Below are positions 4,194 through 50,696 of a DNA stretch of 64,000 bases, piece after piece. Each line of letters starts with the position of its first letter. Within the stretch, counting starts at the first letter, position 1. Under the pieces are notes generated by a model that was given only the letters and a program-made list of their open reading frames with translations, did not search any database and was not told the DNA's origin. Position numbers and translations under genes: made by a program. The stretch is taken from positions 258,634 to 322,633 of IMG/VR virus record IMGVR_UViG_3300031576_000001; one strand, written 5' to 3'.

Positions 4194-4728
4194 GTGACAC
4201 CAACTGAGCCCAATGTACTGACGAAGGAGCGCACGCTAACGCTGGGCAGGGACGTGACCACAGAGAGCACGTTCGAGATTGTTAGCGAAGAGGCACCCCT
4301 AGTGGGGGAGACGTACAAGGTGTTTGGTGACACTGTAATTGTCACCCACGTAGCAAAGGGCCCACCAGCGCTCAGGAACCCGCCCCCCTCCTTTCCCTGT
4401 GTGGCTTGTCCGTCTACGGGCACCCTACCGCGGGCTCCTGTTGACAGGGGCAGTGTTGGAAAAGATCCCGCCGAAGAGGTACGAGCACCTGGCAAGGGTT
4501 CTCTGTCAAAAGGGCAGCAAGCCCGCCGAAGAGCCTGACGTGGGTTCATGGTGGACCACGCCAGACACAAAGACCGCGGAGGGGTGTACCGTTACCTCCC
4601 TGGTGCTCACCCTTGTCAAGGTGTTTCCTCGCGAGGGGGGCAAGGATTACTGGGAAGTCATCGTCAGTAGTTCCTCCGCAGTACCGCCCCCGCGAGCGGG
4701 TTTCCTTGTCTCCCTGGCTCAGGGCTGA
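4194..4728 (+). pseudogene. probable frameshifted hypothetical gene (ORFs 4191-4538 and 4399-4728)
   Basis: Coding-like sequence changes frame near the C-rich run at about 4379-4398; GGTGTA motif at 4178. Confidence 0.4.
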
Positions 4729-4734
4729 AACCCT

Positions 4735-5295
4735 ATGGCTCTACTTTCCGTTGTGCTCCCCCCTGACGTTGCCAGGCTCCTTTCCACCCTAGACGTGCCC
4801 GGGGAACGTGCCTCGGATCATCACGTAACCTTGGTGTATCCGGGTAAGACATTGCCATTTGAGGCGAGCCTGGCTTACATAGGGGCAACCAACAAGGCGC
4901 TCTCCGGGCTGAAACCCTTCACGGTCACGGTGAACGCTGTAGGTACTTTTGCGGCCAAGGACGGCAAGGTGCCAGTGGTCGCCAAGGTCGAGGGCGAGGC
5001 TTTGCATGACCTGAGAGAGCGCCTGGTCAAGGCGCTAGACGAGGCTAGTGTGGAGTATGACACCACCTACAAGGACTATAGGCCCCACGTCACCCTGGCG
5101 TTTGCTGAGGCAAAGGACGTAGGATTCATGCAGACCCTACCCTCTCCGGTGACGTGGGGTGTATCCGAGGTAGCTTTCTGGGGAGGCAGTGAGGGCGCCA
5201 GCGGTATCCAGGTGACGTTTCCCTTGCTCTTGGCGAAGAGGGTGGCGTCTAACTACCTGCGCAGAGGGGCAAGGTATCCAGTACAACGCGGCTAG
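4735..5295 (+). CDS. 2H phosphoesterase (2'-5' RNA ligase/Acb1-like)
   Basis: Two HxT motifs, HHVTLVY and PHVTLAF, about 85 aa apart. Confidence 0.85.
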   Translation: MALLSVVLPPDVARLLSTLDVPGERASDHHVTLVYPGKTLPFEASLAYIGATNKALSGLKPFTVTVNAVGTFAAKDGKVPVVAKVEGEALHDLRERLVKALDEASVEYDTTYKDYRPHVTLAFAEAKDVGFMQTLPSPVTWGVSEVAFWGGSEGASGIQVTFPLLLAKRVASNYLRRGARYPVQRG

Positions 5296-5803
5296 GGGGG
5301 TTGCGCTTCTTGCTGAACGCTGCAGGGTCCACGGTCAGCGCACGCTTGCGAGATACCCTGTAGACCCCGGACTCGTCTGGCACGTTTATCCAGCCGTGCT
5401 CCAAGGCAAACGCTACGGCAGCGTCAAAACTCTCTCGGGTGTAATCGTTTCCACGGACCTTGTTCCACCACGCCTCACGGGGAAGAGGCAGGTAGATGAA
5501 CAGGTCAGAGACGTACTGCGACCATTCTTCACATTTCGGAGCTACCGCCTGCCAAGTCACCTCTTCGCTGAGCAAGGGTACCCACCCAATCTCCTTGCCT
5601 GCCGTGCCTACCAGCCTCATGTTTTCGAGCCAAGCCACGGTCTGACGGAAACCGTCATCGGTCAGGTGTGTCTGCCTCTGCGCTAGCGCCCACCATGGCT
5701 TGTACAGAAGAGGCACCATCGACTCCCGTAGAATGTCCAGCACGGGGAGTGCCTTGATAAGCCAGAACGGTGAGCCATCGGGGGGGTGCCTAGAGACTTC
5801 CAT
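5249..5803 (-). CDS. hypothetical protein
   Basis: GGTGTA motif (TACACC at 5815) just upstream of the ATG. Confidence 0.65.
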   Translation of the reverse strand: MEVSRHPPDGSPFWLIKALPVLDILRESMVPLLYKPWWALAQRQTHLTDDGFRQTVAWLENMRLVGTAGKEIGWVPLLSEEVTWQAVAPKCEEWSQYVSDLFIYLPLPREAWWNKVRGNDYTRESFDAAVAFALEHGWINVPDESGVYRVSRKRALTVDPAAFSKKRNPPSRVVLDTLPLCAGS

Positions 5804-6230
5804 GCCTCTCTTGGTACACCACCGAAGCCAGGGGAGAGGCTAAGTTGTAGTTCTTGGACTTGGAGTCGCTCTTGGGGGTCACCGTGACCCCCATCTTTTG
5901 GTGGTACGCCAGCGCCACGTCCGTAAAGTCGCGTTGGTTGTCTGGGTCTTGGTAACCCAAGAAACCATCAAGGAAGTCTGCCGGTACCAGGGAGTCCTCA
6001 AAGGGGATCATCCCTACCAGGCTCTCTTGCCAGCCTGCCTTACTGCCCAGGTAGACCTCAATATGCGCCCAGAGGGCGACAGGGTAGTTGGCGATCCCTA
6101 GCTCCCCCTCGACCACGGCGGTGAGAACGGCAGACCACCCTCTTGGCGCTGGCACCGTGGTTATCGTGCGTACCTCCCCCAGGCTTACCTTCGGTGCCTT
6201 CGGGGGCTTGTCCTTCTTCTTTTTACCCAT
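5790..6230 (-). CDS. hypothetical protein
   Basis: ATG overlaps the MazG TTA (TTATG); own in-frame TTA at 5841 precedes the next gene's promoter motif. Confidence 0.7.
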   Translation of the reverse strand: MGKKKKDKPPKAPKVSLGEVRTITTVPAPRGWSAVLTAVVEGELGIANYPVALWAHIEVYLGSKAGWQESLVGMIPFEDSLVPADFLDGFLGYQDPDNQRDFTDVALAYHQKMGVTVTPKSDSKSKNYNLASPLASVVYQERHGSL

Positions 6231-6598
6231 AACGCCAGCTTTCCGCCGTGCTTGAAAGCTCTCTTGCGGTTGACCTCGTGCTTGAGCCGGACAGCCCTGT
6301 CCATATCCACCCCGAGGGTCTTGGCCGTGTCCAGCGTGCGAATGAGAATATCCGCTAGCTCCTCCTCGGCGTTGGTTAGCTCAGGGTTCTTGTCGCAAGG
6401 CTCGTACAGCTTGCCCTTGCGCACTACTTCCCAAAGCTCCGAGACCTCGCCGGTCAGGTTGGTCAGGAAAATGGCCATCCTTTCCACAGAAGGCTTCGTC
6501 TGCAAAGCACTCTCGTGGTGAAACCCGTGCTCAAGGGCATTCTGAAACACCACGTCCGCTACAGCGTTGAAATTCGTCGGGGGTAGGGGCTCACTCAT
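6185..6598 (-). CDS. MazG-like nucleotide pyrophosphohydrolase
   Basis: GEVSELWE and EEELADILIRTLD motifs; C-terminal K...NR.R...HGGK followed two codons later by TTA (6230-6232). Confidence 0.85.
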   Translation of the reverse strand: MSEPLPPTNFNAVADVVFQNALEHGFHHESALQTKPSVERMAIFLTNLTGEVSELWEVVRKGKLYEPCDKNPELTNAEEELADILIRTLDTAKTLGVDMDRAVRLKHEVNRKRAFKHGGKLALWVKRRRTSPRRHRR

Positions 6599-6656
6599 GG
6601 CTACGCCTAGCTTACCCCTGCTAGACTTCTTTTGCCAGCGACAAGGGGCAGCACCC

Positions 6657-6932
6657 ATGACTTCACCCCCTCAAGGTAACGGCAACGGTAAGCACCCCCC
6701 AGTAGACACGGCACCCGATAGCCTACCCTCCCCTACTCCTTGGGGTGGCGACGTGGGGCTCATCCAGGCACACATCGAACGCCTGACCACCCGCGTAGAG
6801 GTCAATATTCACATGACCCAAAAGCTCGACCGAGACTTTGCCCACGCGGTAACCGAGCTAAGAGGCGACATTGCAGGGATGCAAGTCAAGCTGGCTAAGA
6901 TTCTTGCAATACTGGAAGCTGGGGCACCGTAA
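6657..6932 (+). CDS. hypothetical coiled-coil protein
   Basis: ATG 6657; heptad-like C-terminal half. Confidence 0.55.
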   Translation: MTSPPQGNGNGKHPPVDTAPDSLPSPTPWGGDVGLIQAHIERLTTRVEVNIHMTQKLDRDFAHAVTELRGDIAGMQVKLAKILAILEAGAP

Positions 6933-7698
6933 CCACGCCAGAGAGGAAGGCTTTGCCGTAGTCCGCCTCTCCGGTGTAGACGTTGAGGGTGGGCGACTCA
7001 CGGAAGACCCCTGGGGAGTGTGTGTGTCCGCAGTACACGTCAAAGGTGACCGTGGGGTTACGTTTGACCTGATCTCGGAGCATCTTACCCATGGCGGCAC
7101 AGGTCATCCAGGGTAGCCATTGTTCGTCTGACAGCTTACCTTGGTGCCATGTAGCCCCGGAGAAGGGGGCTACATGGGTGGCGAAGATGACCCTTGTAGC
7201 GCCTAGTGTGACTGCCTTGTCAATCTTGGCTTTGGCGCGGGCTACCTCGCGGTCTGCCACGCCCTGGATCTTGGCGGTTAGCTCGGCGCCGTGAAGGTAC
7301 CGAAACTCCCCAATGCGGTGCATGTCGGAGAGCAGGACGTGGCTGGCTCTGATGTTGCCGGCGCGGTTGTCGTAGAAACCATCTTGCCCGACGAGGTACG
7401 TACTCTCTCCGCAGTCTAGAGGGGGCAACGCTGAGAGGTAGCCCAGGGTTGAGACTCGCTTCTGAAAGCCGTCTACCGAGGGTGCGTTGTAGAAGTCGTG
7501 GTTGCCCAGCACGAAGAAGATGGCCCTGCCGGTGCGCCTGGTTAGCCCTTCCAAAGCCTCAGCGACAGACTCAGACTGTGCAATGTCCCCCGTGATGAGC
7601 ACCCCATCGTACTCTTGTAGTGCGCTGCAAAGAGCCGAGTAAGCGGGTGCTGAGAGAAAGGGGACGTGGGGGTCCGTAACCCAAGCAAGGCGTATCAT
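6895..7698 (-). CDS. calcineurin-like metallophosphoesterase (Icc/CpdA-like)
   Basis: TDPH, ITGD, GNHD, THVAP and GHTH motifs. Confidence 0.9.
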   Translation of the reverse strand: MIRLAWVTDPHVPFLSAPAYSALCSALQEYDGVLITGDIAQSESVAEALEGLTRRTGRAIFFVLGNHDFYNAPSVDGFQKRVSTLGYLSALPPLDCGESTYLVGQDGFYDNRAGNIRASHVLLSDMHRIGEFRYLHGAELTAKIQGVADREVARAKAKIDKAVTLGATRVIFATHVAPFSGATWHQGKLSDEQWLPWMTCAAMGKMLRDQVKRNPTVTFDVYCGHTHSPGVFRESPTLNVYTGEADYGKAFLSGVVTVPQLPVLQES

Positions 7699-7705
7699 GT
7701 CGCGG

Positions 7706-8053
7706 CTAGTTTACACCGCCTAACAAGGCGGGCAAATTAGCGTCGCGCTTTTCCGCTGTGACGAGGAGGGCGCAAGCAAGCACATGCTTGCACTTGTTAC
7801 CCCTGCGAAAGTCCTCGCAGGTACAGGTGGACGTGTTGCCTGTGACCTTGACCACGTAGGTTTGTTTCTCGCTGGGAACATTATACACCCCGTTCCCCTG
7901 TGGCTCGATGTCGCCCGTGAAAGCCAGTGCTTTATTGAGTCGCTCTTTCCACTTGGGGTTCTTTGCACCCCATGCGTCGGCTAGCGCCCTCATGGTCTGG
8001 TAGGTAGCGGCGGCTTGTTTACGGCGGACAATGCGGTCGTGTAGGTCAGACAT
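7706..8053 (-). CDS. SWIM zinc-finger protein
   Basis: CTCEDF...CKHVLA; in-frame TTA at 7721 just before the next gene's GGTGTA motif. Confidence 0.8.
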   Translation of the reverse strand: MSDLHDRIVRRKQAAATYQTMRALADAWGAKNPKWKERLNKALAFTGDIEPQGNGVYNVPSEKQTYVVKVTGNTSTCTCEDFRRGNKCKHVLACALLVTAEKRDANLPALLGGVN

Positions 8054-8062
8054 GCTCTCACA

Positions 8063-8278
8063 TTACCCCCTAGATAAGCGCATGTGTGTTGCGGTGTCAC
8101 TCGCGCTTACCCCGTGCATCCCCCTGAACATCCGGGCTACCTCGTCGGCTAGCCTGACACCTTCCGCCAAGGGGCGGTTCATTTCCTCTACGCTCAACCT
8201 CTCGTAGTGGCACTGGTGAGGGTGCTCGGTAGGGCGTAGCTCTGGGGCTCTCTTAAAGGAGGGGGGCGGGGTCGGCAT
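8063..8278 (-). CDS. small hypothetical protein
   Basis: ATG 8278; in-frame TTA at 8075. Confidence 0.45.
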   Translation of the reverse strand: MPTPPPSFKRAPELRPTEHPHQCHYERLSVEEMNRPLAEGVRLADEVARMFRGMHGVSASDTATHMRLSRG

Positions 8279-8372
8279 GTCGGTCTTTGTGGTGCAGAGC
8301 TTACAATAGCCCAAATTCGAGTGAACTGAGAGGACAACCGTGGGTAAGAGTAGTGTAGAGGTGAAAAGTACG

Positions 8373-8636
8373 ATGAACGCGAAAATGACCCCCACCGAGA
8401 GGGGACACTTGGCAATTTGCGGGTACAGGGTTGAACAAGCCCTGGGCTTGGTTGTACCCCCACTCCCCCTGCCTTCCTGCGAGGTGCCCCTTGTCCACCT
8501 TGGGCTGGCGGCGGCGTTGTGGGAGGGCGAGGTTGTCTTCAGTACTGAAGAGGGCATACCCGCCTATCGACCCTCCTCGGGGTTTCTTGACGCCCTGACC
8601 CTCTGTCTGGCACGTATCGCGAAGACGTGTCATTAA
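8373..8636 (+). CDS. hypothetical protein
   Basis: ORF ending 9 nt before the 8646 ATG. Confidence 0.5.
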   Translation: MNAKMTPTERGHLAICGYRVEQALGLVVPPLPLPSCEVPLVHLGLAAALWEGEVVFSTEEGIPAYRPSSGFLDALTLCLARIAKTCH

Positions 8637-16730: not shown

Positions 16731-17629
16731 AGGCTCTGGTTCTCTCCGGTGGTGGTAGTAAAGGCTCCTGGCAAGCGGGCGTATTGACTCGTCTCCTTGG
16801 CGAAGAGGGTCAGTACTACGAGGTAATCTGTGGTGTCAGCGTGGGAGCCCTCAACGGGGCCTTCCTGGCTCAGTACCCTCTGGGTAGAGAACGTGAGGCC
16901 AGCTTCGATCTTGGTAATCTCTGGCGTGCTGTAGAAACAAGCAAAATATACAAGCGCTGGTTCCCCTTTGGGCGACTACACGCCCTCTGGCGCGGTTCTG
17001 CTTACAACAGTGAACCCTTGGCGGATTGGGTGTCCACTGCACTCGACACCAAGAGAATCCAAACGTCCGGGCGTAAGCTCAGGGTGGGTGCAGTTTCCTT
17101 GACAACAGGGGAGTACCGCCTCTTTGGTGAGGACTACCCAGAGCTAACCCAAGCTGTTCTTGCGTCAGCTAGTTTTCCAGCCGCACTTTGCCCTGTATCG
17201 ATGGAGGGTGAGCTTTGGTCCGATGGTGGGATCAAAGAGATTACCCCCCTGCAAGGAGCCATCGCTCTTGGTGCTTCGCACGTTGACGTGGTTTTGTGCT
17301 CCCCCAAGAGTACCACGACCCCCTTCCCTGCGGACGCTAACGCAATCAGCGTAGCTATGCGAACGATTGACCTCATGAGCGATGAGATCCTCAACGACGA
17401 CCTAGCTAAGACCGCCATGGTCAATCAGCTTGTCGAGGCGGGGGCGTGCAACGACAAGCGCCTGGTTACCATACGGGTTTTCCGCCCTGAGAAGAACCTG
17501 ATCGAGTCGAGCCTGGACTTCTCTAACGACAAGATGCGTGCCTTGCTTGACCAAGGGTACGCGGCAGCTTCTCGGTGGGAGAGCCTGTTAGCCCCGAGGT
17601 TAGTCCCCCTCTTAGGTGAGCCTGGCTAA
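16727..17629 (+). CDS. patatin-like phospholipase
   Basis: GGGSKG, GVSVG (GxSxG), ASASFP and DGG motifs; first in-frame TTA at 17588. Confidence 0.92.
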   Translation: MKALVLSGGGSKGSWQAGVLTRLLGEEGQYYEVICGVSVGALNGAFLAQYPLGREREASFDLGNLWRAVETSKIYKRWFPFGRLHALWRGSAYNSEPLADWVSTALDTKRIQTSGRKLRVGAVSLTTGEYRLFGEDYPELTQAVLASASFPAALCPVSMEGELWSDGGIKEITPLQGAIALGASHVDVVLCSPKSTTTPFPADANAISVAMRTIDLMSDEILNDDLAKTAMVNQLVEAGACNDKRLVTIRVFRPEKNLIESSLDFSNDKMRALLDQGYAAASRWESLLAPRLVPLLGEPG

Positions 17630-18487
17630 GAGGTCGTGCTTTAGCCACGCCTGGGGGTTGTCATCGCGTCTACGCCAGAGGCAGCTAGCCCGCTGGGTGG
17701 GGTTGACTGCACCCAAAGCCCCCTCTGCGCAACTCCACCAAGAGGTAAGGCTGACGCCCTCCTCGGCGTGAAGGAGATACCCCGTGATGCGCCACCCCGA
17801 GGCGGTACGGTAGCTGTAGGTCTCGGGGTACTTCCCACGCAGGACCATGGGTAGCCCGTCCAGGTTCTTGCCCCTGTCCAAGAGCCATTCTCCCTTGCCG
17901 GCGATGTTGACCCTGCTGCCCAAGAAGTGCCTGGACTTCTCCTGACCTCGGGGACCGTCAAAGAACATCCCGTCCAGCGCTACGAGGTACGTACCCATAG
18001 GCACCCCGTAGCGCTGGCTCTGCCCGTCGTAGACGTGAACCACCGGACAGGGTACCGGCCAGGGTGCCCGTGGACTCGTTTCCAGCTTGCCCCCCAAGTA
18101 GTCCCCCAGGTAGTCCTCCAAGAGGCTGTGCTTGTCGAAGAACCCCTCTTCTTCGAGCTTGTCCAGCTTGTGCAACACTTCCTCTTGCTCGGGGCTAAGC
18201 AAGCTGTCGCTGGTGTGCGCCAGAGCTTCTGAGATGGGCACGGGCACCTTGACAGGGGAGGGCTCCGAAGGCTTGGGTTTGCGAGGCGCTGGGTCGAGAA
18301 GAGGTGCCGCGCCGCACAGAACCTCCATGACCAGGGCACGGGTCATCTTCCCACGGATCACGCGCCCAGCTTTGATGTCATCCTCCACCCGGGCGATAAG
18401 CGCCAGCTTCGTCTCGGGCGTCGTGAGGTCGCGAACGTGTTCAAGGAGCAGCCGGTAAGCCCCGCTGCGTGAGTCGAGCGTTGTCAT
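17612..18487 (-). CDS. hypothetical protein
   Basis: GGTGTA motif at 18501; in-frame TTA at 17627. Confidence 0.7.
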   Translation of the reverse strand: MTTLDSRSGAYRLLLEHVRDLTTPETKLALIARVEDDIKAGRVIRGKMTRALVMEVLCGAAPLLDPAPRKPKPSEPSPVKVPVPISEALAHTSDSLLSPEQEEVLHKLDKLEEEGFFDKHSLLEDYLGDYLGGKLETSPRAPWPVPCPVVHVYDGQSQRYGVPMGTYLVALDGMFFDGPRGQEKSRHFLGSRVNIAGKGEWLLDRGKNLDGLPMVLRGKYPETYSYRTASGWRITGYLLHAEEGVSLTSWWSCAEGALGAVNPTQRASCLWRRRDDNPQAWLKHDLLARLT

Positions 18488-46143: not shown

Positions 46144-46566
46144 ATGCTGAAGACACTTGACGAGCTAGACAAAGAGGCTACAGAGGCGGGCGTGTCTGTC
46201 CCTGTGTGGATGCGTAACGCGGTAGCCAAGAACCCAGAGTATGTTTTCTGGGGTCCAGACCAGGATTATATGTGGAAAGCGGGCACCGGGTGGGAGGCTC
46301 CGCTAGCCTTTGCCTCTTGGGGTGACTGCAACCTCGTGCTTGATGACTTGAACGAGGTTGTACACTTCTACTTCGGGGTCAACGGCGATGACCCGGAGAG
46401 GGTGACCTTGACGTTGACCTTCTGGCTACTACACCCCCGCCAGAGCGCCTCTCGGGGGGTCCGTATTCACCGGGTAGCTCAGGCTGACTTGAGAAATGTC
46501 TACCGGTTCCTTCGTCGTGCTGCCACGCGCAACGCTCAGAGGTTTGCCAAGGTGCCTCGTCGGTGA
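46144..46566 (+). CDS. hypothetical protein
   Basis: GGAG SD; GTGA coupling to the next gene. Confidence 0.7.
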   Translation: MLKTLDELDKEATEAGVSVPVWMRNAVAKNPEYVFWGPDQDYMWKAGTGWEAPLAFASWGDCNLVLDDLNEVVHFYFGVNGDDPERVTLTLTFWLLHPRQSASRGVRIHRVAQADLRNVYRFLRRAATRNAQRFAKVPRR

Positions 46567-46952
46567 TTGTTCTCGACGATGCTGAGCCTGCGGTATTGGG
46601 TGAGCCTGTCCAGGCTTACAGGAATCTCTCTGTGCGAGAGGGGCGGCTCTACTCGGTACGGCTCAGGGGACGGTTAATCGCCAGGGTACAAGACCTTTGG
46701 TTGTACGATGTTACTTTTCGTGTGCGACCTGGGGGTCGCAGGCGTGCTTTGCGAGAGGGTGTGCGCAACGTACACGCCTTTGTCTCTGGCACAGCGGTCT
46801 CTCTCATGCCTAGAGGGCTACTGTGGCAGAGAGCCAGCTACAACCCCTTTCTCACTGACCGGGCTGGCTTTTTTCTGGTGGAGTCGGGTCAGGAGGTGTC
46901 TGCGGCACGCTATGCGCGTTTGGACCAGGAGGGGTGCTTTGTGGTGCTGTAG
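46563..46952 (+). CDS. conserved phage hypothetical protein
   Basis: YRNL...YSVR...FRV..GGRRRALREGVRNVHAFV.G...YNP; carries an internal TTA at 46674. Confidence 0.7.
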   Translation: MIVLDDAEPAVLGEPVQAYRNLSVREGRLYSVRLRGRLIARVQDLWLYDVTFRVRPGGRRRALREGVRNVHAFVSGTAVSLMPRGLLWQRASYNPFLTDRAGFFLVESGQEVSAARYARLDQEGCFVVL

Positions 46953-49030: not shown

Positions 49031-49290
49031 GGTAACAATCTCTCGTGTTTGGGTGCCTGGCGGAAGGGGTACACCGAGAGAGCCACGGGGAGGACCACGC
49101 TTGCGGGGGAGCTAGAAGAAGGCTTTCATGGTGAGCGTAGGGTAACCAGGGTTAGAGGTTGGTACAAGGGGTGCGCCCTGCGGGAGTTGAACCCGCGCAA
49201 AAGAACTTTAGAGGCTCTGTACTCTACCTTTGAGTTAAAGGCGCGTTGTGTGGGCTTCTGCTCGATCTCACGAGGTAGCCCGTTGTGAAG

Positions 49291-49754: not shown

Positions 49755-50696
49755 TCAAAAGGCGTTATACACCGGCAAGGGTAAGCTGTCGGCAAGCGTA
49801 AGCAGTTGGTGGTTCAAGGCGATCAAGGCGTCGCGGTCTTCTAGAGGCTCCAAGAGGGTGCTGTCTACGCCCTCCAAGCCGTAGAACGCCCCGAGGAGAG
49901 CCCCGACCATGCTAGCAATGGTGTCAGTATCACCCCCTCTACGGATGGCTAGCTCGATACCCTCCTTAAAGGAGGTAGCTACCGCGGCCAGCGCAAAGAC
50001 AACCGCCACGTCTGCTGTGACCCCTCTAGGTGGGAGAGCCTTGAGGTACCCCGCCAGGGAGTGCCTGGGCAAGGGCTGAGGGAAGTTCTCAAAAATGTCG
50101 TGTAGTTTCCCGGCTGGCAGCATGGTAGCCACCTTCTTAGCCAGGTAGGTAGGTGTGGTTACCTGTAGGGCTAGTAGACCCACCCCAAGAGCGATAGCCA
50201 TGCTGCCGTGCCTTGCCTCGGGGGACTGGTGGGTCAACGAAGCGTCCACGTCGGCGTATCGCGCGGCTAGGTCCAGGTCATGCCGGAAAGCCAGCCCGAT
50301 GGGCGATACCCTCATGGCGGTACCGTTGCCCTGTGAGCCAGCGACCCCACAGGTTGTCGGGCTCTTGGTGCGTAGGTACTTCAAGATAGCCTCACGCACG
50401 GTGTTCCCCATCCCCCTGCACGAACCGGACTGAAACCACTTGTAGTAGCTCTCCATGACGGCGCTGGGGTTGAACGTCTTCTCTTGGACGAGGGACTTGG
50501 CAAGCGCCACGGTCATCTGGGTGTCGTCCGTGACCTGACCTGGCTCAATCATGAGCCAATTGTTGCGCGTGGGTAGGTAGGAGTGCCCATCCCAGTCAAG
50601 CAAGAGGGGGCTGAGGCTCATCCTCCCCTCGAAAGGTGCGCCCAGTGCGTCCCCTACGGCAACCCCGACGAGCGGGGCAGGCGTGCGGTCTTTCAC
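49755..50696 (-). CDS. ADP-ribosylglycohydrolase (DraG/ARH family)
   Basis: GDALGAPFE, TDDTQM, GNGTAMR, SLTH and GGDTDT; in-frame TTA at 49782. Confidence 0.93.
   Translation of the reverse strand: MKDRTPAPLVGVAVGDALGAPFEGRMSLSPLLLDWDGHSYLPTRNNWLMIEPGQVTDDTQMTVALAKSLVQEKTFNPSAVMESYYKWFQSGSCRGMGNTVREAILKYLRTKSPTTCGVAGSQGNGTAMRVSPIGLAFRHDLDLAARYADVDASLTHQSPEARHGSMAIALGVGLLALQVTTPTYLAKKVATMLPAGKLHDIFENFPQPLPRHSLAGYLKALPPRGVTADVAVVFALAAVATSFKEGIELAIRRGGDTDTIASMVGALLGAFYGLEGVDSTLLEPLEDRDALIALNHQLLTLADSLPLPVYNAF

Follow-up and report, generated by a model that had tools for sequence, protein, structure and literature searches.

Changes to the genetic code that turn a sense codon into a stop have been described in only a few places, all of them organellar. 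In the mitochondria of Thraustochytrium and other labyrinthuleans (NCBI translation table 23), TTA is a stop in addition to TAA, TAG and TGA, and the change is tied to a substitution of Ser204 in the codon-reading motif of RF2a (PMC12574857). UUA and UCA serve as stops in pedinophyte-derived dinoflagellate plastids, and UUA and UUG in Marsupiomonadales mitochondria; these genomes have modified pRF2 or mtRF1a and use RNA editing to remove internal cases, and the plastid case was described in 2025 as the first sense-to-stop change outside mitochondria (PMC12574857). The code changes described so far in phages (TAG to Gln and TGA to Trp, in crAss-like, Lak and other gut phages) go in the opposite direction—from stop to sense—and some are known to switch codes during infection (bioRxiv 10.1101/2021.08.26.457843). 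In Streptomyces, UUA remains a leucine codon, but a rare and limiting one, read by the bldA tRNA and given regulatory roles in a handful of genes, and UUA-triggered bypassing has been proposed in a Streptomyces phage terminase (PMC10732093). Finally, stop codons that overlap the next start (AUGA, UAAUG, UGAUG) are a familiar means of translational coupling in bacterial and phage operons.

In this paper, we have tried to understand one small junction that touches upon each of these systems. It lies in a cave-metagenome jumbo phage (phage 1), an IMG/VR virus record that consists of a single 322,633-bp contig with 58.6% GC and 39 tRNA genes and that is rated 68% complete; the window that we analyzed is its last 64 kb, and the features discussed below are collected in the table. 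A first-pass annotation of the window, made from the sequence alone, had noticed that a MazG-like gene on the minus strand seems to end at a TTA whose A is also the A of the next gene's ATG, had proposed that phage MazG-like proteins end at HGGKxx, and had favored true termination and reinitiation over simple stalling. The observation is correct, and what we have found is that TTA marks the end of about a quarter of all genes in this phage and does the same in two related phages.

Features of the junction and of related loci (window coordinates unless marked genome)
Position	Strand	Feature	Remarks
6233..6598	-	MazG-like NTP pyrophosphohydrolase coding sequence	122 aa from ATG 6598; an alternative upstream ATG at 6658 would add 20 aa; last residues KHGGKLA
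6230..6232	-	TTA codon in the stop position of the MazG gene	shares base 6230 with the next ATG
6228..6230	-	ATG start of the downstream gene	TTATG one-base overlap; begins MGKKKK
6185..6229	-	Standard-code read-through tail of the MazG frame	WVKRRRTSPRRHRR plus TAA at 6187..6185; most likely never translated
5844..6230	-	Downstream gene, function unknown	129 aa; conserved in phage 2; standard-code ORF 5790..6230
5841..5843	-	TTA terminator of the downstream gene	next gene's ATG at 5803, 37 nt on, preceded by GAGAGG
46674..46676	+	In-frame TTA inside a conserved domain	L5 gp82-like ORF 46563..46952
49170..49244	-	Solitary class-I tRNA, anticodon CUA (reads UAG)	far from the 38-tRNA array
genome 238383..240665		vWA-domain protein	~780 aa; conserved in jumbo phages

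On the minus strand, the codons for HGGKLA are followed directly by TTATG (6250..6228 in all). Read with the standard code, the MazG frame continues for 14 more codons (WVKRRRTSPRRHRR) and overlaps the next ORF by 46 nt. The protein itself is a MazG-like NTP pyrophosphohydrolase by its match to the Pfam model (PF03819, E 5.4e-5, 23.8 bits against a cut-off of 22), and a search of 5.8 billion proteins returned 75 homologues, several of them named NTP pyrophosphatase by JGI. In a 40-sequence alignment, the acidic metal-binding core (E..E...EE..AD) is conserved, with E51, E54, E79, E80, A82 and D83 invariant, and all 39 aligned homologues, at 45-62% identity, end in HGGKxA or a close variant at the residue before the TTA; only the window's own protein has a tail. 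The family ending that the first-pass annotation proposed is, therefore, right, and the closest homologue (54% identity) has TAG at exactly that position. The site is not an assembly error, because Logan contigs from two runs of the same cave sample match window 4500-8500 without a single difference, including a 151-nt piece across 6195..6345. Neither a comparison of the locus at the DNA level with 50,697 phage records nor searches of IMG/VR for close relatives with the MazG, downstream and vWA proteins found a match.

The ATG that shares its base with the TTA is the real start of the downstream gene. Its orthologue in a related phage (ph2_44885_45274 of phage 2, introduced below; 46% identity, also 129 aa) begins MPKAKPKVGDVRT behind a good Shine–Dalgarno sequence, and this aligns to residues 10-22 of the window's protein, which excludes the internal GTG at codon 26 and leaves the ATG as the only start codon upstream of that point. 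Both orthologues end K-[ND]-[YF]-N and are followed by TTA, and the window's protein has no Pfam hit. The basic tail of the standard-code MazG ORF, with its rare AGA and AGG codons, is a by-product of reading the lysine-rich N terminus of this next gene out of frame. A programmed -1 frameshift on the A-rich run GGTAAAAAG would fuse MazG to the next gene, but there is no canonical slippery heptamer, and the idea is unnecessary once TTA is a stop.

Is this a local oddity? It is not. In 223 long ORFs, TTA is the rarest Leu codon (122 of 87,659 codons), and 72 of those 122 lie in the last 30 codons, which hold only 7.6% of codons (binomial P 3.7e-48), with 13 more in the first tenth; 13 other rare codons are evenly spread. 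The effect is frame specific: outside the last 30 codons, there are 50 in-frame TTA codons against 732 and 514 in the other two frames. The mean codon log-likelihood ratio falls from +0.153 before the TTA to -0.102 after it, and in a comparison of stop types, the value after TTA (-0.041) cannot be told apart from that after TAA, TGA or TAG (-0.033 to -0.072). When genes were called again 58 times, each time with one sense codon added as a stop, only TTA raised the total coding score (+864), and the next best, CAT, lowered it by 385. With four stops, 104 of 389 genes end in TTA (against 164 in TGA, 63 in TAA and 58 in TAG), and both coverage and gene number rise. Most of the “internal” TTAs of long standard-code ORFs turn out to be junctions of two same-frame genes, such as TTAcccATG, TTAgccATG and TTAcgtagaaggaggggccacATG; in one such case, a ThyX domain precedes the TTA, and a CxxCxxCC domain follows it. 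It should be said that Pfam and PHROGs scans of many TTA-ended ORFs mostly found no family and that several TTA “stops” at convergent gene pairs are simply the complement of the partner's TAA.

Homology outside the MazG family tells the same story. The vWA-domain protein matches phrog_2426 at E 1e-152, and the profile ends at position 736/736, three residues before a TTA, although the standard-code ORF runs 62 residues further. Of 120 members of this family, 117 end exactly at the column before that TTA, and the three with tails—this phage and two that we refer to as P0114 and P0175—all carry TTA there, have tails that begin with Leu, and form a clade of exactly three in a maximum-likelihood tree (support 0.875). 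Nearly all other in-frame TTAs on the P0114 and P0175 contigs sit at the 3′ ends of called genes. P0114 lies on a 205-kb contig of an NCBI metagenome-assembled genome (MAG) labeled Lysinibacter sp., and this contig is our phage 2: there, 42 of 76 in-frame TTAs are in the last 30 codons (P 9e-27). Phages 1 and 2 share at least 91 largely syntenic orthologues, and when both are called with four stops, 38 pairs have C termini aligned within three residues, of which 12 are TTA/TTA, 12 put TTA opposite TGA, TAA or TAG, and 14 are canonical on both sides. A tblastn comparison of all stop-to-stop frames was uninformative, because off-frame shadows of conserved genes dominated, and it was replaced by an in-frame count, in which TTA is 1 of 34,098 conserved interior codons in phage 1 and 1 of 34,327 in phage 2; the next rarest sense codons occur 89 times (CAT) and 65 times (AGA), respectively. 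As a negative control, 44 IMG/VR loci that carry the same vWA gene, at 34-69% GC, show no accumulation of TTA at ORF ends; the trait belongs to this small clade and not to high-GC jumbo phages in general.

We argue, with high confidence but without protein or RNA data in which termination itself could be observed, that TTA is a fourth termination codon in this phage lineage and that the TTATG junction is a one-base stop/start overlap of the UAAUG/UGAUG kind, which most likely couples translation of the two genes by termination followed by reinitiation. TTATG is the commonest overlap of this type, with 6 cases in phage 1 (one of them, TTA TGA, ambiguous) and 9 in phage 2, against one TAATG and one TGATG in phage 1 and one and three, respectively, in phage 2; ATGA overlaps number 35 and 21. 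The MazG junction has no Shine–Dalgarno-like 4-mer (GGAG, GAGG, AGGA, GGGG or AAGG) upstream, which fits coupling by reinitiation. The preference of the first-pass annotation for termination and reinitiation over stalling is reasonable, because a ribosome parked on, or an mRNA cut at, a UUA that shares its A with the next AUG would block that start; it remains, however, an inference, as does the efficiency of release, which is suggested by the dependence on it of about a quarter of the genes, including those for proteins of 1,000-2,400 aa. TTA stops avoid A at the preceding position (3% against 15%) and at the following one (5% against 23%), although the second effect is at least partly a genome-wide avoidance of TTAA (observed/expected 0.34), and Trp is enriched as the last residue before TTA in phage 1 but not in phage 2.

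What might recognize UUA is much less clear. A Pfam RF-1 search found nothing in phage 1 and only two bacterial hits (RF1 and RF2) in the 5.1-Mb bin, a phmmer search with RF1 and RF2 against all six-frame ORFs of both phages found only noise, and no GGQ motif is conserved between orthologues; no recognizable release factor is encoded on the phage contigs as assembled, and the agent is therefore a host factor, an unrecognizable phage factor, or a gene in the unassembled part of the genome. The only candidate host, a Lysinibacter-like MAG linked by binning and matching GC alone, has an RF2 at least 90% identical to that of Lysinibacter cavernae, with the SPF motif intact at residue 204 and with a TTA at the conserved Leu of RITHLPTG in its own gene, and the bacterial contigs of the bin also carry mid-ORF TTAs. 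If that organism is the host, its code is standard, and the phage must change decoding; if it is not, an unknown host may share the four-stop code. The Leu tRNAs of phage 1 (anticodons GAG, TAG, CAG and CAA) cover every Leu codon except UUA, and the same holds for the 36-tRNA array of phage 2. Each phage also has a solitary class-I tRNA. That of phage 1 (anticodon CUA) is 276 kb from the tRNA array, and that of phage 2, at the syntenic position just downstream of orthologues of an ADP-ribosylglycohydrolase and a 155-aa ORF, has anticodon UAA, lacks the long variable arm of Leu tRNAs, and could read UUA, which counts against the four-stop reading. Under the four-stop reading, both would be suppressor-type tRNAs, one for UAG and one for UUA, and this fits UUA belonging to the stop class. 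The tRNA(CUA) suggested a recoding of TAG, but no TAG, TGA or TAA lies inside conserved alignments, and the coding score after TAG is negative.

Other explanations can be imagined, and we consider each of the following two unlikely. One is that UUA has a dual meaning, Leu early in infection or in some contexts and stop later, with the switch driven by loss of the host tRNA-Leu(UAA) and modulated by the solitary tRNA. What keeps this idea alive is the one in-frame TTA inside the conserved L5-gp82-like domain, which aligns to Leu in phage 2 and may be a nonsense allele, a residual sense use, or a read-through site; the candidate host, which decodes TTA as Leu; the syntenic solitary tRNAs with their different anticodons; and the known code switching of recoded phages. 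However, only one such TTA was found in about 34,000 conserved codons, TTA-ended genes are spread over the whole genome rather than one block, and the host link rests on binning only. Somewhat less likely still is that UUA is an unassigned or “hungry” codon, at which ribosomes stall and the peptide is freed slowly by rescue pathways (ArfB-type factors, peptidyl-tRNA drop-off plus Pth, or A-site mRNA cleavage followed by rescue). The absence of a UUA-reading Leu tRNA from the phage's near-complete set (only 150 of 262 host tRNA candidates were scored) and of a release factor gene would suit this idea, as would the limiting UUA of Streptomyces (PMC10732093) and the unassigned codons that apparently exist in high-GC Micrococcus and in Mycoplasma. 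Yet slow or tag-and-degrade rescue would be costly when about 27% of genes, including very large and conserved ones, end this way; the shared base at 6 and 9 junctions would leave the downstream gene blocked; and back-up canonical stops after TTA are not clearly enriched.

The remaining possibilities are very hard to sustain. A single loss of an ancestral TAA or TGA, leaving MazG with a real 15-residue basic tail, would need only one substitution, the standard-code ORF is indeed open, and a public automated gene call lists the 137-aa form; however, the same situation recurs at 104 genes here, 75 in phage 2 and 6 of 6 in a third contig, which cannot be independent accidents. An artifact of sequencing, assembly or base modification that turns TAA into TTA is less likely again, even though the two differ by one base and phage DNA is often modified: an independent assembly of two runs agrees base for base, the pattern is frame specific, 63 genes still end in TAA, and three phages from three different projects (IMG/VR, NCBI and ENA) show it.

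How, then, does this phage compare with the systems with which we began? With table 23, it shares the codon and the same four-stop code layered on an otherwise bacterial-type code, with TTA where homologues have canonical stops and nearly absent from conserved gene interiors, but table 23 belongs to an organelle genome with a few dozen genes and an altered RF2a, whereas here, the genome is that of a 322-kb phage without a recognized release factor, and the RF2 of the candidate host keeps SPF. The plastid and green algal mitochondrial cases were detected by the same logic, of codons that occur only at homologous gene ends, but in our phage, UUG remains a common Leu codon (16.8 per 1000). Like the recoded gut phages, this one carries a large tRNA set with a suppressor-type tRNA and is misannotated by standard gene callers, but here, a sense codon becomes a stop. 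Like the coupled operons, the junction joins two genes on the same strand by a one-base overlap without a strong Shine–Dalgarno sequence, but the terminating triplet is one that canonical RF1 and RF2 do not recognize. As for Streptomyces, an actinobacterial setting is likely here, too (given the Lysinibacter bin, the L5-gp82-like gene, and MazG relatives in Microbacterium and Gordonia phages), and UUA decoding may be limiting, but in Streptomyces, UUA is not the regular end of a quarter of all genes. Our full-text literature searches found no report of TTA as a stop in a phage or a bacterium; the codon change is a known one, but the setting is unprecedented and the mechanism is probably different.

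If this reading is correct, then standard gene callers give wrong C termini, false overlaps and false gene fusions for roughly 100 genes per genome (the public protein entries for this contig already carry the spurious tails), and current code-detection methods, which infer only the amino acid meaning of codons, cannot see this class of change. A bacterial-type translation system can apparently terminate at UUA without a recognizable dedicated release factor on the phage. Tentatively, and with rather less than even confidence, one might imagine that the phage itself imposes the change from Leu to stop on a host with the standard code, by means of a factor unrelated to known release factors and perhaps together with removal of the host's tRNA-Leu(UAA), while the solitary tRNA locus would tune read-through; an undescribed bacterial host lineage that itself has four stop codons is the alternative and is also not excluded. 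In the first case, host and rival-phage mRNAs that contain internal UUA would be truncated, while phage genes, purged of internal TTA, would be immune—a possible new mode of host shut-off, or of protection against competitors, through the genetic code.

Far from the array of 38 tRNA genes at genome 21-31 kb lies a solitary tRNA with anticodon CUA, a class I molecule of the amber-suppressor type with A at position 73, and at the syntenic place the related phage that we call phage 2 has a class-I tRNA with the anticodon UAA instead. Next to the solitary tRNA, and conserved with it in phage 2, is an ADP-ribosylglycohydrolase (Pfam E 2e-60) that is itself terminated by TTA. We also found one in-frame TTA that is an exception: it sits inside the conserved domain of an L5-gp82-like gene (Pfam PF25735, E 1e-22), where it is aligned to Leu in the phage-2 orthologue, and it is the only such case in about 34,000 conserved codons. 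The positions of these and the other features are collected in the table.

Positions of individual features in the phage genome
Feature	Position	Strand
Solitary tRNA, anticodon CUA	window 49170..49244	-
ADP-ribosylglycohydrolase gene	window 49785..50696	-
L5-gp82-like gene	window 46563..46952	+
In-frame TTA within the L5-gp82-like gene	window 46674..46676	+
2H/LigT-type phosphoesterase gene	window 4735..5295	+
Calcineurin-like metallophosphoesterase gene	window 6895..7698	-
SWIM zinc-finger protein gene	window 7706..8053	-
TTA ending the SWIM zinc-finger protein gene	window 7721..7723	-
Convergent gene pair, mirrored TTA...TAA	window 17588..17630	
Convergent gene pair, mirrored TTA...TAA	genome 15381-15397	
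Convergent gene pair, mirrored TTA...TAA	genome 186663-186675	
Convergent gene pair, mirrored TTA...TAA	genome 212355-212365	
ThyX-like and CxxCxxCC-domain genes, joined in the standard code	genome 224664..226136 (positions 4664-6136 of locus L012)	

The neighbours of the MazG gene are a 2H/LigT-type phosphoesterase with a weak match to Acb1 (anti-CBASS), a calcineurin-like metallophosphoesterase, and a SWIM zinc-finger protein that, like MazG, ends at a TTA. Some convergent gene pairs end in mirrored TTA...TAA arrangements, in which each gene's TTA is the complement of the partner's in-frame TAA, and which triplet ends each gene is ambiguous there. Across the whole genome, the tetranucleotide TTAA is strongly under-represented (98 observed, 290 expected), possibly as a form of restriction avoidance, and A is also avoided immediately before TTA stops, which global composition does not explain.

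What of the genomes beyond this one? The 5.1-Mb bin in which phage 2 was found (G001, an NCBI MAG labelled Lysinibacter sp.; contigs C1, C2, C4, C74 and C98) holds 136 tRNA matches in several arrays together with at least two contigs of phage 2, and it is therefore a mixed bin of bacterium plus jumbo phage; one of its arrays, on C98, does carry tRNA-Leu(UAA). On two bacterial-looking contigs of the same bin (C8 and C9), 29 long ORFs end only in TAG or TAA and none in TGA, which is unusual for an actinobacterium of 56-60% GC. Elsewhere, in IMG/VR UViGs of 65% GC (L104 and L105), 3 of 7 in-frame TTAs lie in the last 30 codons, a borderline result that could be chance or could be a further lineage.

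Finally, a ThyX-like gene and a CxxCxxCC-domain gene are joined into one 490-aa ORF when the standard code is applied, with only a TTA between them, and this is an example of the false fusions that standard annotation makes in this phage.
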